DNA from: Hyphochytrium catenoides | Taxonomy: Eukaryota > Protista > Hyphochytriomycota | Assembly (NCBI GenBank): GCA_900088475.1 | Contig: FLMG01003917.1 | Span: 1 to 64,000, forward strand | DNA: 64,000 nucleotides | Direction of reading: 5' to 3' | Shown here: positions 19,101-25,817 of the stretch, one piece after another | Layout: each line of letters opens with the position of its first letter | Numbering within the stretch: position 1 is the first letter of the stretch | Notes under the pieces: model-generated | Told to the model about the DNA's origin: nothing | Seen by the model: only the letters and a program-made list of their open reading frames with translations | Databases searched by the model: none | Program-made: the position numbers and the translations under genes

Positions 19101-21541
19101 TATCTGCGAGAGTGCTTCGGCCACTGATCTAAGCTGCTTTGTGACTTATGCAGCTACCAGAGTCGCAGACTAAAGGCTTGAACGCTGCGGGTGTGAAGAA
19201 TGTGGTCCTTGGTCACCTAAAACTAGCAATTAAGGCCTGGAGGATGCTTAGGGTTGAAAGAAGGCGAGAAGAGAACCACGGTGACTGTGGCGATCTCCAT
19301 CCTCTGGATAGAGAAGAGATTTTTGCCCTTCTGCCCTCATCTCCCTCTTTCACGCGCGCGGTCCTAGAACGCGTGACTGCTGCCTTCCGCAGACTGGATG
19401 TAAGTGGGACCACGTGGCACGGCGTTAAGTTCAAATTATCTGTAGTCGACCTCCGCCTAACGCACTTATTATCTGTCCTTTCCTCACTCTATGGTGCAGC
19501 CTGACATAGTCTCCATGTACAATAGTCTAGGGGAGCCTTTCGATGAGGTATTGCGTCTGCTCTCTCAAGCATATTCACTCCAAACCGCTAGCTTCTTCCT
19601 ACTCCACCTTATTAGGGGGTAGCTGGTTAATCTCTATTTCTAACATGCAACCTACGTTATTGTATGTATTGCTTGCCACTTGCTACACTACTCTTACCTC
19701 TGAGTCTGTCCTGCCTTGTCCTGTCTTCTAAGTAAGTTCAAGGTTCACCTCTCATAGATATGACAATGCAACTCCACATCATGCAGGTCCTAATATGCTG
19801 TGCGAGGCTTGCAGGCGCAAAGAGGGTGGTGCTTGAAATGCCCACGTTGTCTCCAAACAGCCAAAGTCTGGACCTCATAATTGCTCCTTCACACTACGTC
19901 AAGTATCATAAGGTAGCTCATCCGCTCATTCCCACTCCAATCCTCCTTCTTGTGCTGCTCCTCTGTCTTATCTCAGCCGCCATACCCTTTTCCGTCCATT
20001 TAAAGGTTTCGGGTCTGTCTTGGAAATAGAGTCCTGGCCCTCAGTTCCTCTAGTACTCTGACTAATCAGTTTTTTCGTGGGGCGAATGACGCCACCGAAA
20101 TTCTACTCTAGAACCCTTAGCCTTCTTCTGATACCACCACATCTCGTTCCTCAAAACGTGTAGTCTGTCAAGGTTGCAACGGAGAAGACTCGGTCGCTCG
20201 TGCATGTTATAACTCCAGGACTGCACCGGCATAAGGTGGAGTGTGATTCAGACAAAAAAGTGCACAAGAAGGAGATAGACAAACTCAGAATTTGGCTGGG
20301 TGAAGGACGTCGGAGGTTGCACTTCTCGCAACCTGAATCTTTCAACTCCTTGGAGCTCTGGGATAGTCCTGGAGGGCAACAGAGCAATTGCTGGGGAAGG
20401 AGGAACCAGAACGGCGAAGGAGAGAATAACTTGTCCATGACCCGTCGCCCAACAGTGGTTGGCACTGTTTCTCGAATGGACCCAGAAAAGGCGGTTGGAT
20501 TAGTCCTTCACAGTTTAAGGATACTTTCTCAGTCAACCTCACATGATGTTAGAGCTCTTATTGTGGGTGGTGGGCCTCTGCTTCCCTATCTGAAGGAGCA
20601 AGCCGCAAGGCTAGATGTTCAAGACCGAGTGTACTTTGCGGTATGCTACTTGGGCATATGTTCCCTTGGACACTCATCATCCCTGGCACTATCTCCTCTC
20701 CCCAGCTATCAGTCCCTGCATCTAGGGAGGCTATCTTCGTCCTTTTGCTTTCGTTCTTCTTCTCTTTGAAGTTGCTTTGGGAACCTGCGACACTTCTCTT
20801 CCTTGTCCTCCCAAGGACCTTGTAGTGTAGGGTGGGCCTAAAACTTTCCTGCGTCAGGGTCCGGTGTTCGACGGCCTTGGGTGCTACTTAGAAGCTATGG
20901 ACATCTTCGTCAATCCCTCTCTCGCCGAGGAGACATTCTGCTTGGCTAACATAGAAGCTATGGCTGTTGGGCTGCCCGTCGTATCCTTTGGTAGGCACTC
21001 CTCCCACTGTCCTCCTTTTAAGGCTGGGTTCTCTCCTCCATTTCTTTCTCTTGAGCCATTTGCCACCGTTTAGCTATGCCTTTCTTTGTCGACCGTCCCG
21101 TTTGGGCCGTCAGATAGCCGGGACTAGCTCCTGGGATACTCTGAGAATGCTTATTACTTACCTCTTCTCATTGCGCGCTGCACTCTAGCAGTCTAATAGG
21201 CCCTAGCTGGGCAACCTTCACCCTCCTTCCACACAGTTTAGAGTTGTCAGCTTTATGGTAACCCTCCTTTTTGCGTTTTTGTAGGTCTTGGGGGCCAGGG
21301 AGAGTATCTTAGGCACGAGGAAAATAGCTTGATAGTACATAATGTCTCGGTGGACGCGCTCGCTGCATCTCTCGCCCAATTGATCAAGGATCCAGGACGC
21401 GCACGGAGGATGGGGAGGAATGGGAAAGAGCTAGTACGGGACAAGTACCAGCTAGATCGCACCAAGAAGGAGTATCTGGCAATGTATCATGCGCTAATGG
21501 CAGATGACGAGGCTGAGGTAAAGGGAGAGGATAAGGCTTGA
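16183..21541 (+). CDS. Signal-peptide-bearing glycosyltransferase with a C-terminal GT-B / GT4 (Glycos_transf_1) domain; many exons
   Basis: N-terminal signal MGAWYCLLLVLTLSWLVRA. C-terminal exons read VVGTVSRMDPEK, LIVGGGPL, DIFVNPSLAEETFCLANIEAMAVGLPVV (E-x7-E GT4 motif) and ARRMGRNGKELV. Middle exons are only partly resolved, so linkage of the 5' exons to the GT domain is inferred. Confidence 0.72.
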
Positions 21542-22235: not shown

Positions 22236-25200
22236 ATGAAGCTTACAAGCAAACATTCTGCTTCCATGAGACAGATAAGACTGTCTTTGGCGCCCATCTT
22301 TCGGTAAGGGCACAATGCCTGCTTTCCACCTTCAGCACGTCCTGATTTGGAAGGTCCTTATCTCCTTCAAGTCTCTCACGCTTCCTTCTTCTGACTGATT
22401 ACTCAACTGCGTGGTTCACTGTCCTGTAGGTGACAGAGGCTCTCAGTCTAATCCTCTTTTGCTAACTCCCTCCGACCTGTGGTCCTATGTGTAGACGCCA
22501 AAAGGTCTGCACTGTACCGCTAGTGCGATGGGATGCTCAGTCGCCATCATTTTCTCTATGGTCACACTTGTCACAGCACCGGCCCAGAAACCGAGATGAT
22601 CATCGACTGTAAGAGTAACTTGATAGGCAGCTCTCGACCATATTTAGATAGACTGCCTCACTAGAGTGCATCGTAAATTCCCCTCACCCTTCCCTTCTAC
22701 CGCATCTTCCCTTACATTCTCTATCTTTAGATACGGCAAGCCTCTCGCAGCTCTTTTCACCTCCGCAGCACTTCTTGCAGCACTTCCTCAGGTCAGAGTA
22801 GTGGGACAGGTGAAGGAAATGAGAGCCAGAGGTACATGCATTGACCTAGAGTTAAAGTGTCGACTTTTCCCAATGCGAGACCATAACGAACTGCAAAAGG
22901 GTTGAAAGGGTTAAGACCAACGGAGGCAGTAGAAGAGCTGGAAAAGCGCTGTGGCAGAGATGAAACCAATTAGACGGTTATCTCACAAAGTACATGCAGG
23001 GTGGCGCTCTAGGGTCTGCTCGAGCTGAGGCGGAAGAAGTACAGGAACCTGGTGGATCCTCGCTCCCTACCTTTAGGTTAGTCGACCCATTCCATCCTCT
23101 TCCTAAAGGTTGTTCCCGCTTCTCTACACAGGATACTTTACTTTATCACTCGTTCCCCTATCGACGCTAACTGACCTCAGCTCAATGGTATGTGGTTGTC
23201 TGCAGGCATCGCCCTAAAGTAATCTTTGTCCTCGGAGGTCCTGGGGCTGGAAAGGGTACCCAATGTGAGAGGATTGTTGAGTGCTATGCATTCATACATC
23301 TTTCGGTCCGTCCCGTAAGCTTTTAAGTCTTCGTATCTCTAGCTTTGATTAGCCTTCTTTTCCTCCTAACAGGCCGGCAATCTGCTGAGGGAAGAGCGAG
23401 CCTCTGGGTCTCCTGATGGGGAACTTATAGACCAGATCATAAAAGAAGGAAAGATAGTACCGGTAATAGAGGAAGGAAATTCATGATAACTATACAGGCT
23501 GAAGAGAAGCGAAAGAAGGGAAAGAGAAGTATCAAAGGAGAAAACGTGCGGTCGAAGTTGCCACACTATGTTGGCATGTGAAATGTGCAATGAATCAGAG
23601 GCACAGCAAGACATGAGAAATAATGGACATGCGATTGAGTTGTGCTCCTTACCAAGGTGTCTTCATCTCAGGTTGCAATCACTCTTCGGCTGTTGAAGAG
23701 AGCAATGCTGAAAAGCAAGGGAGAGATATTTCTCATCGATGGCTTCCCAAGGAACTATGATAATTTACAGGTATGTTCTTCATGTATGTACGAAGGGCTC
23801 TGATGGTCGTAGATCCACTCACTTCTATATCTGACAAAGGGCTGGGAGAGGGCAATGGGAGGTGACGTTGACGTAGAGGCAGTCCTCTTCTATGACGTCC
23901 CACAAGACGAGATGGAGATGAGGTTGCTGGCAAGGTACGATGTGGGAAAATGTTAAGGTAGTTATCAAAGAAGCTTCAGATGTGGAAATGGCCTGCGTAT
24001 GGTTTGCCGAAGTGAGACGTGGACGCTCTTGCAACTTCAAAAGTATGAGTTTGATGAACTGGTGCAGTATGCTTGTCGCATAGGCCTCGGAGAGTTACAG
24101 TGTATATAGCTTCTTTATGTGGTGGACCCGCCGGTGGAAGGAGTTAGAGCAAGAATCACTCTAATTGGTTTCTCTCGTCCTGTTAGAGGAAAGACAAGTG
24201 GCCGAACCGACGACAATATTGACTCCATTAGAAAGCGATTCAAGACCTTTGCAGAAGCGGTAATAAGATCTGTCATGTGACTCCCTACCTCTTGCTTATG
24301 GACCCTTTGGACGAAGCCAGTCGTCCGTACAGTTGTTGACCGATCCTTCTTTTCCACTCTTCGCAGTCCTCTGTTCACTTCGAAATCGTCCTTTGCTAAC
24401 TGTATACTCTCTGTAGACTATGCCTATCGTGAACCACTATGAGGAACAAAACAAAGTTATTAGAATTACAGGCACAGGCCGTCCAGACTTGGTTTTCAAG
24501 TCTACCGCGAAAGCAGTGGAACCGCTACTAGAGAAGCACTTGGTGCAGATTACTCAGGTAGCGCATCTACCCTGCCTCGTTCAGGCTGACGGGTGTCCTT
24601 TTCATTGCTTTTATGAGACTGATGTTTCCCGAGATTTTTTCACACGCAGTCTGTATCAAGCTCGCCTCAGACACGACCATCCCTTTTACCTTAGAGGACG
24701 TGCTTCTGGTTCTAGATTTTAGAGGGCCCTGGGGGGTCCTGTGCCTCCATTGAACCCCATCTTGACTCGTTTTTTCCTTTTTTATAGAGACTTTTGGACG
24801 CTATCCATAGCGGGGACTGGGAGACATACGAGGTAAGCCGCAAAAACTTCCCTTAGGAGCTCAAGCTCGTCGGACGGTCATCTTATCATGCCTGATGTAT
24901 AGGAACTTGTCGATCCATCATTGACAGCATTTGAACCCGAAGCTGTAGGGCATATTGTCGAGGTACAATTGTCACTGACCAGGAGAAGCTCTGTCACATT
25001 TGGTTCTTATTATTCTTCACACCATAGAACCGTCACCTCCTTTGACTTGTAACCTTCAATCTTTCTACCATGGATCTTTCATGCATCTCTATTTCTCAAG
25101 TTACGTCGGCATGTCTCTGAAGAAGTGATGGTCTGATTGCCGCTCTCCCTGATCTCAAGGGTCTAAAGTTTCACGAATTCTACTTCAAGCACTCGGGACG

Positions 25201-25817
25201 AGGCAATGCCGGGGCGACAATGGTACCCCGAGTCTATACGCTTTGATGAACTTATCTCCTGTCATTCTAGCTCTTGCCCTGCCGGAACTCCACCTACGAT
25301 AGCTCCGTCACCTTCTTCTTGCCTTGTCGCCCATCTGCCATACTATATCTCTGCGATCGCACCCTCGCAACTCTGTACTCTGTGCCATTATACTCCGCCA
25401 TACCAAAAGCGCCTCTGCCTATAAATGTTCATATCTGCTCCCACTTCCTTCGACAGAGCACTATTGCTGATCCCCGCGTGAGACTGCTGAACCATGCAGC
25501 GATAGTCACGTATGTCCGGCTTGTGCAGGTAAGGAGATAGGGGCCTTCTTTAGAAGGAGCTATGCAAGAGAGCTAGATAGATAAAGGAGAGAGAATCAGG
25601 ACACACGGAGTTAAAGAGTGAGGAGACAGCAGATTGGGGGATAATGGTGGCATGAAGGCAGTCATCTCTCAGCCATGCTCATTCAGTCTCTCTGTAGCAT
25701 GAGAACAATGGAAAGTTCCACACTTCAAGCTATGAGGAGACCCGTGTTTGGGAGCAGCAAAGTGATGGCTCTTGGAAGCACAGTCACTTCCATAGATCTA
25801 AGCCTCCTGCTTCGTAA
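22236..25817 (+). CDS. UMP-CMP kinase (adenylate kinase family) fused to a C-terminal CaMKII association (hub) domain, with an N-terminal transit-like extension; about 15 exons
   Basis: Kinase exons: [19 protein letters not shown]|[16 protein letters not shown]|[11 protein letters not shown]|[18 protein letters not shown]. Hub exons: ITQ|[15 protein letters not shown]|[20 protein letters not shown]|GLKFHEFYF...[11 protein letters not shown]...IVTYVRLVQ|...[22 protein letters not shown]. All junctions are GT-AG and in frame. Stop TAA at 25815-25817. Confidence 0.88.

Follow-up and report, generated by a model that had tools for sequence, protein, structure and literature searches.

A UMP-CMP kinase fused to a CaMKII-type hub domain in Hyphochytrium catenoides, and its relatives in other stramenopiles

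We analyzed a 64,000-nucleotide stretch of the Hyphochytrium catenoides genome (positions 1 to 64,000 of contig FLMG01003917.1, assembly GCA_900088475.1; hereafter the window), in which a gene on the + strand is predicted to encode a UMP-CMP kinase joined directly to a hub (association) domain of the CaMKII type. The gene contains eleven short exons between 23206 and 25817, each translated separately and all with canonical GT..AG borders, and was searched exon by exon against Pfam, NCBIfam and the Protein Data Bank. Six of these exons encode the kinase and the following five encode the hub, and three candidate exons lie further upstream. Our reading of the sequence is that this is one gene, with an encoded protein of approximately 346-387 residues depending on the choice of start (22994 or 22236).

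The first kinase exon (23206..23305) carries the P-loop GGPGAGKGT and by itself passes the gathering score of Pfam ADK (33.7 bits, against 26.8), matching positions 1-26 of this model and positions 1-29 of TIGR01359, the NCBIfam model of the UMP-CMP kinase family. The second (23373..23462) encodes the nucleoside monophosphate (NMP)-binding segment (AGNLLREE ... GKIVP) and matches ADK 27-56 and TIGR01359 30-60 (E 4.6e-07), and the third (23672..23770), which contains FLIDGFPRN, matches ADK 59-88 and TIGR01359 61-94 (E 8.3e-08). These are followed by a fourth exon (23840..23934) matching TIGR01359 95-124, where 20 of 31 residues are identical to the related Achlya protein P0029, by a fifth (24187..24259) with the short LID and IRKRF (TIGR01359 127-149, E 1.2e-06), and by a sixth (24417..24557; TIGR01359 151-182), which encodes the C-terminal helix and runs on into HLVQITQ of the long N-terminal helix of the hub. 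Together the six exons span positions 1-182 of the 185 positions of TIGR01359, in order, and TIGR01359 is the top-scoring model for four of the six. The TIGR01359 bits of the exons, scored separately, sum to approximately 173, with the family cut-off at 207.6 bits; the relatives P0029, P0030 and P0035 score 253, 259 and 225 bits, i.e., above this cut-off, and all three fall below the cut-off of 284 of the AK1 model.

All catalytic motifs are present in the window exons and agree with the family consensus, i.e., the P-loop GxPGxGKGT, the NMP-site arginine (LLR), DGFPRN, the short-LID arginines (RG.TSGR.DDN) and RKRF. The solved structures closest to the kinase are the UMP-CMP kinases of Dictyostelium (1qf9/2ukd), human (CMPK1, 1tev) and yeast (Ura6, 1uky), with E-values of 1e-55 to 1e-57, template modelling (TM) scores of 0.84-0.89, approximately 50% identity and the catalytic motifs retained. 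The N-terminal half of the protein is, by these comparisons, a complete eukaryotic-type UMP-CMP kinase, which would phosphorylate UMP and CMP with ATP. Eukaryotic UMP-CMP kinases have approximately 195 residues and end at the C-terminal helix, whereas the fusion continues into the hub; they are normally monomeric. As the earlier note on this DNA had read from the letters, neither a Ser/Thr protein kinase nor a calmodulin-binding segment is encoded here: no exon of the gene has a Pkinase match in Pfam, so that the kinase of CaMKII is absent, and no calmodulin-binding segment is present in the gene.

The hub part begins with an exon (24788..24832) that directly follows exon 24417-24557 in the family alignment and continues the N-terminal helix, sharing 9-10 of its 15 residues with fusion and stand-alone hubs. 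The second hub exon (24903..24962) matches positions 27-45 of Pfam CaMKII_AD (PF08332) and the Chlamydomonas hub 6of9 (E 5.2e-05). The third (25160..25222), containing GLKFHEFYF and a variable loop, has no match of its own in Pfam or the Protein Data Bank, and was set on the FH.FYF block of hubs by tblastn and alignment. The fourth (25457..25528) contains the first cavity arginine (YVRLVQ) and matches CaMKII_AD 68-91, with 6of9 as its top Protein Data Bank match. The fifth (25698..25817) encodes EETRVW and HFHRS, with the second and third cavity arginines, and ends in a TAA stop at 25815-25817; it matches positions 94-127 of the 128 positions of CaMKII_AD and alone passes the gathering score (27.8 bits, against 22.1). 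All five hub exons are phase 0. The only Protein Data Bank entries matched by the hub exons are CaMKII hubs and 6of9; for example, the last exon (39 residues) matches the CaMKII beta, alpha and delta hubs with E-values of approximately 1.6e-05 to 1.9e-05. Since the separate exon matches fall in the right order, the match of the fusion is far beyond chance. The earlier note had described a complete NMP kinase followed by five hub exons at these positions, and both family models are indeed covered in order by exons with GT..AG borders.

We then consider which kind of PF08332 domain this is. Identity of the window hub exons is 54-56% with stand-alone hubs of the planctomycete type and 47% with the hub of P0029 (63% for the kinase part). 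The P0029 hub in turn matches the CaMKII delta hub (E 4.5e-27), superposes on the tetradecameric hub 2w2c with a TM score of 0.88, and has CaMKII hubs as its top structural matches; the relatives also carry precomputed PF08332 annotation. What distinguishes ring-forming hubs from NTF2 and isomerases is three arginines in a deep cavity and an equatorial dimer interface rich in histidines (McSpadden et al., 10.1101/536094). All three arginines are kept in the window (YVRLVQ, EETRVW and HFHRS); we presume them to be those of the cavity from human CaMKII alpha numbering together with the text of 10.1101/536094. The second and third are invariant in the family alignment, and the first is retained in the window, in Nannochloropsis and in stand-alone hubs, and is replaced by asparagine (FANVIQ) in the Saprolegniales fusions P0027, P0028, P0029 and P0141. 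The histidines of FH.FYF and H.HRS are conserved in the family and are candidates for residues of the dimer interface. Another hub architecture may be represented by P0142, a protein of 204 residues with a strong hub match (120 bits) preceded by approximately 70 residues that have no Pfam match.

The domain was also compared with the iota-carbonic anhydrases, because the diatom enzyme LCIP63 has PF08332-like domains (PMC6776030). LCIP63 is, like the fusion, a stramenopile protein; its domains are annotated as CaMKII-AD-like and it is multimeric (PMC6776030). It differs in having repeated domains of another sequence subfamily with the motif (H)HHSS, which defines iota-carbonic anhydrases (PMC6776030) and is absent from the fusion, where the window has HFHRS; we therefore rejected this identity. 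The domain is better described as a CaMKII-type hub than as an iota-carbonic anhydrase, because all three cavity arginines and HFHRS are kept. A survey of Tara Oceans data divided PF08332 sequences into iota-carbonic anhydrases and a eukaryotic cluster annotated as canonical calmodulin (CaM) kinases (PMC8119650), and this latter cluster may hold UMP-CMP kinase-hub fusions instead of true CaM kinases.

Several features of the junction argue that kinase and hub are parts of one polypeptide. The intron between them (24558..24787, + strand) has GT..AG borders and a length of 230 bases, which is not divisible by three; if translation continues past the donor at 24557, 54 unrelated residues are added before a stop at 24722. 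On the other side, a TAG codon in the hub frame immediately precedes 24788, and the hub exons lack a start codon, the first methionine being the final residue of the third exon. The last kinase exon has no stop, and its end, HLVQITQ, already belongs to the long first helix of the hub. The window exons tile residues 6-317 of P0029, starting at residues 6, 38, 68, 101, 132, 156, 203, 219, 238, 262 and 294, with no gap or extra residue at any exon joint, the 24557-to-24788 joint included; exon 24417-24557 aligns without gaps to P0029 residues 156-202 and to the junctions of P0014, P0015 and P0018, each contained in a single open reading frame (ORF). In the genomic loci of relatives (L001/L002, L003/L004 and L005), introns split the upstream part of the kinase and the junction is uninterrupted in one ORF, and in L006 the entire fusion of 352 residues is one intronless ORF on a 50-kb contig. 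We accept the 24557-to-24788 splice because relatives carry the junction within one ORF, and on this sequence evidence we regard the kinase-hub fusion as real, and as one polypeptide, with very high confidence. The single gene proposed by the earlier note, as opposed to a separately transcribed hub, is upheld by the one-ORF junctions of the relatives, the missing hub start codon and the TAG at the acceptor.

The same note had seen almost no linker between the two domains, and the linker proves to be at most approximately 3-5 residues, with the kinase model ending at residue 188 of P0029 and hub alignments starting at 191-194. AlphaFold models of two relatives, P0029 (predicted local distance difference test, pLDDT, 89.7; predicted TM score, pTM, 0.87) and P0032 (pLDDT 85.6, pTM 0.82), both have the junction spanned by a continuous helix, formed by residues 178-209 and 191-223, respectively. 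This helix is 32-33 residues long and leads from the last helix of the kinase into the first helix of the hub. A helix crossing the junction in this way predicts a rigid attachment, where CaMKII has a flexible linker.

The junction exon (47 residues) was searched against 1.84 billion proteins, where most matches were tandem adenylate kinases and repeat proteins; the only useful matches, P0014 and P0015, are short fragments that contain the C-terminal part of the kinase and the hub in a single ORF. P0018 is a third such fragment, and all three come from long genomic contigs. Using a retrieval profile built from these fragments, with the window exons as separate rows, we found full-length proteins with PF00406 and PF08332 in Achlya hypogyna, Aphanomyces stellatus, A. 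euteiches, Saprolegnia parasitica, Nannochloropsis oceanica and six further assemblies. The look-up of this domain pair suggested by the earlier note gives the same picture, both domains being annotated in Achlya, Aphanomyces, Saprolegnia and Nannochloropsis proteins. The ESM Atlas has two clusters with both domains (62 and 59 members), where diatoms are listed as commonest, and the representative of one of them superposes on the two-domain model with a TM score of 0.76 over 299 residues. A plain UMP-CMP kinase cluster of approximately 197 residues is commonest in Oomycota, i.e., it is a paralog beside the fusion. From these sequences, the fusion is a paralog of long standing in stramenopiles, conserved in oomycetes, Nannochloropsis and apparently diatoms, and occurs well beyond this genome.

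Two models of what is apparently one Nannochloropsis oceanica gene, P0033 and P0035, were seen among the relatives; the N-terminal kinase part is missing from one, and in the other the HFHRS end of the hub is replaced by an aberrant C-terminus. At two of the relatives' loci (L001:5843-7153 and L003:3403-4855) a gene for a CaMK-type Ser/Thr kinase lies directly upstream of the fusion gene on the same strand, with CaMKI, CaMKIV and CaMKII as its top solved matches and a tail that resembles a regulatory segment. The window and L006 lack such a neighbor, and in L007 the kinase match is no more than faint. We rejected a single protein made of the CaMK-type kinase, the UMP-CMP kinase and the hub, as the upstream ORF has its own stop, which is separated from the start of the UMP-CMP kinase by 280 bases in L001 and by approximately 1 kb in L003.

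Database names for the fusion are automatic, i.e., “UMP-CMP kinase” or, by similarity only, “flagellar adenylate kinase” for the Achlya protein, and no publication describing a hub fusion of a UMP-CMP or adenylate kinase came up in full-text literature searches. The novelty assumed by the earlier note stands to the extent that no describing paper was found; it does not extend to the architecture, which is conserved across stramenopiles and already deposited. The finding is therefore a conserved, unstudied family that is already present in public databases, and a second use of the hub. A hub phylogeny, which had also been proposed, was only partly informative. Our tree, of 13 fusion and 62 stand-alone hubs, with neither the hub of the window nor holozoan CaMKII among them, can place the fusion hubs on one side of a branch, with a support of only 47, which allows rather than demonstrates a single origin. 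A search with the P0029 hub region among proteins of 174-555 residues gave five matches and no CaMKII.

Ahead of the kinase, three candidate 5′ exons on the + strand have good splice sites, are in frame, and encode basic, hydrophobic and acidic stretches in turn. The first (22236..22303; donor CG/gtaagg) starts with an ATG followed by a basic N-terminal segment and is in frame with the next two; the second (22731..22791; pyrimidine-rich acceptor ...tctatctttag/, donor CAG/gtcaga) encodes an Ala/Leu-rich hydrophobic segment; and the third (23000..23076; acceptor ...acatgcag/, donor TTTAG/gttagt) encodes an acidic spacer ahead of the kinase and is linked in frame to 23206 by a split codon, AG+G. 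An alternative start, the ATG at 22994, shares its frame with the third. The best 15-residue Kyte-Doolittle mean of the second exon is 1.97, compared with 1.83 in L001, 2.2 in L003 and 1.64 in P0031, and the same basic-hydrophobic-acidic pattern precedes the kinase in L001 (7432-7550), L003 (5864-6030) and P0031. To judge from its composition, exon 22731-22791 is possibly a signal, an anchor or a presequence. The N-termini of Saprolegniales and P0032 are short and lack a hydrophobic segment, so that anchoring is not family-wide.

Elsewhere in the window, positions 21329-21541 (+) hold the end of the upstream neighbor, whose last ORF weakly matches the C-terminus of group 1 glycosyltransferases (16-17 bits, below gathering). 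The window includes 414 N bases, i.e., an assembly gap, and in its whole length we found no tRNA and no Rfam match at the gathering threshold.

Stand-alone hubs are the known class closest to this one in sequence (Chlamydomonas, Volvox, Gonium and Pirellula, with 6of9 as the top Protein Data Bank match for two window exons); they have no enzyme attached, whereas the hub of the window is fused to one. Non-animal hubs have been described as stand-alone and of unclear function (10.1101/536094). Algal and Pirellula hubs, approximately 50% identical to human CaMKII, assemble as 14- to 20-mers (McSpadden et al. 2019, 10.1101/536094), and hub rings with 12 to 20 subunits have been demonstrated (McSpadden et al., 10.1101/536094). 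The CaMKII holoenzyme of metazoans and choanoflagellates resembles the fusion in having a catalytic domain N-terminal to a hub of the same family, with EETRVW, HFHRS, the three arginines and the fold in agreement. It differs in that CaMKII has a Ser/Thr protein kinase with an autoinhibitory and calmodulin-binding segment, whereas the fusion has a P-loop UMP-CMP kinase and no such segment, and in that the flexible linker of CaMKII is replaced by what is predicted to be a single continuous helix. The bacterial UMP kinase PyrH is hexameric and allosteric and has the amino-acid kinase family fold; as an oligomeric, allosteric UMP kinase it offers a functional analogy only. Its fold is unrelated and its hexamer forms through its own catalytic domain, whereas the fusion carries an added hub.

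Based on these comparisons, the explanation that we favor overall, with a probability of roughly 0.6, is that of a fused UMP-CMP kinase and hub, in which the hub would form a ring, the kinases a crown upon it, and cooperativity or ligand control might follow. The hub would assemble into a double ring of approximately 12-20 subunits, as tested hubs of its sequence class do, and by this analogy ring formation by the fusion hub is fairly probable. The ring would hold the crown of UMP-CMP kinase domains in a fixed orientation through the one continuous helix, and in this way a monomeric, unregulated enzyme would become a large oligomer. Cooperativity, or control by small anionic ligands, could then arise from neighboring active sites and the retained arginine-lined cavity of the hub, and the resulting behavior would be functionally comparable to that of hexameric, allosteric PyrH, reached by a different route. 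In the window and in some relatives, the basic-plus-hydrophobic N-terminal extension would probably target or anchor the assembly. A regulatory role of the hub through its cavity, which the earlier note had proposed along with the ring, is, again by analogy, a good deal less probable than the ring itself. The fullest form of the proposal, in which the hub was independently recruited in stramenopiles to make a rigid, ring-displayed, cooperative kinase set by a nucleotide or small anion in the arginine-lined cavity, we consider speculative and quite unlikely.

Several points weigh against our favored explanation. The window splice from 24557 to 24788 is established by comparison, not by cDNA; the AlphaFold models are of monomers, and of two divergent relatives, P0029 and P0032, not of the window protein; and the N-terminal exons at 22236-23076 are candidates only. 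The high pTM values mean that the kinase is predicted to pack on the hub, and if the ring interface were covered in this way the protein could be a dimer or a monomer. Since the Saprolegniales are without the first cavity arginine, a ligand role of the cavity is not universal in the family.

These points bear differently on the alternatives to a ring-displayed kinase. That two neighboring genes, one for a UMP-CMP kinase and one for a separately expressed stand-alone hub, were wrongly joined is conceivable in that stand-alone hubs of approximately 130 residues are common, but this is extremely unlikely: the hub exons could not start on their own and TAG closes their frame at the acceptor, the last exon of the kinase has no stop and already encodes the beginning of the hub helix, five genomic loci of relatives have the junction within one ORF, and more than 10 annotated or assembled proteins contain both domains. 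A real fusion with a ringless hub deserves more consideration. Here the hub would be a dimeric NTF2-like module with a ligand-binding or catalytic function (compare SnoaL, ketosteroid isomerase and iota-carbonic anhydrase), as might be expected from the dimer being the commonest state in the wider superfamily (PMC9120016), from weak DUF4440 and SnoaL_3 co-matches, from the PF08332-like domains of diatoms that include LCIP63 (PMC6776030), and from the predicted rigid packing of kinase on hub, which might block lateral contacts. The sequence of the hub itself speaks for the CaMKII type instead, as (H)HHSS is absent and HFHRS is found as in CaMKII, the three arginines said to separate hubs from NTF2 and isomerases are kept, the top structural matches are CaMKII hubs, and identity to ring-type hubs is 47-56%, near the approximately 50% at which algal and Pirellula hubs form rings; we consider a ringless hub unlikely.

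Fusion and ring could also both be real with the ring mainly placing or concentrating the enzyme and no allostery, for example in a membrane- or organelle-anchored, nucleotide-regenerating station. The N-terminal extension of the window, L001, L003 and P0031, the cavity arginine missing from Saprolegniales and the “flagellar” label given by similarity to the Achlya protein in one source all fit such a role. It is harder to reconcile with the absence of a hydrophobic N-terminal segment in Saprolegniales and P0032 and with the invariance of the other two cavity arginines, and we think it somewhat less likely still than a ringless hub. The fused, ring-forming UMP-CMP kinase with possible cooperativity or ligand control is the explanation that we retain.

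To our knowledge, the CaMKII hub has been studied almost solely as the scaffold of one animal protein kinase, and the protein described here would be the first eukaryotic-type UMP-CMP kinase with a built-in oligomerization device. A conserved family of hub-nucleotide kinases presents the hub as a general enzyme-displaying scaffold, and provides a second natural case in which the role of the ring and of the conserved cavity can be asked. Comparisons with and without the hub are feasible, because genetically tractable organisms have members (Nannochloropsis and apparently diatoms), as do oomycetes, where the plain paralog is found as well. The PF08332 matches of marine eukaryote surveys, sorted until now as iota-carbonic anhydrase or canonical CaM kinase (PMC8119650), may include the fusion as a third class. 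If independent recruitment and ligand binding in the cavity were true, metabolite sensing would be the ancestral job of the hub cavity, which would account for the orphan ligand site in CaMKII alpha, i.e., the gamma-hydroxybutyrate (GHB) site, and the family would offer a simple, non-neuronal system for hub allostery.

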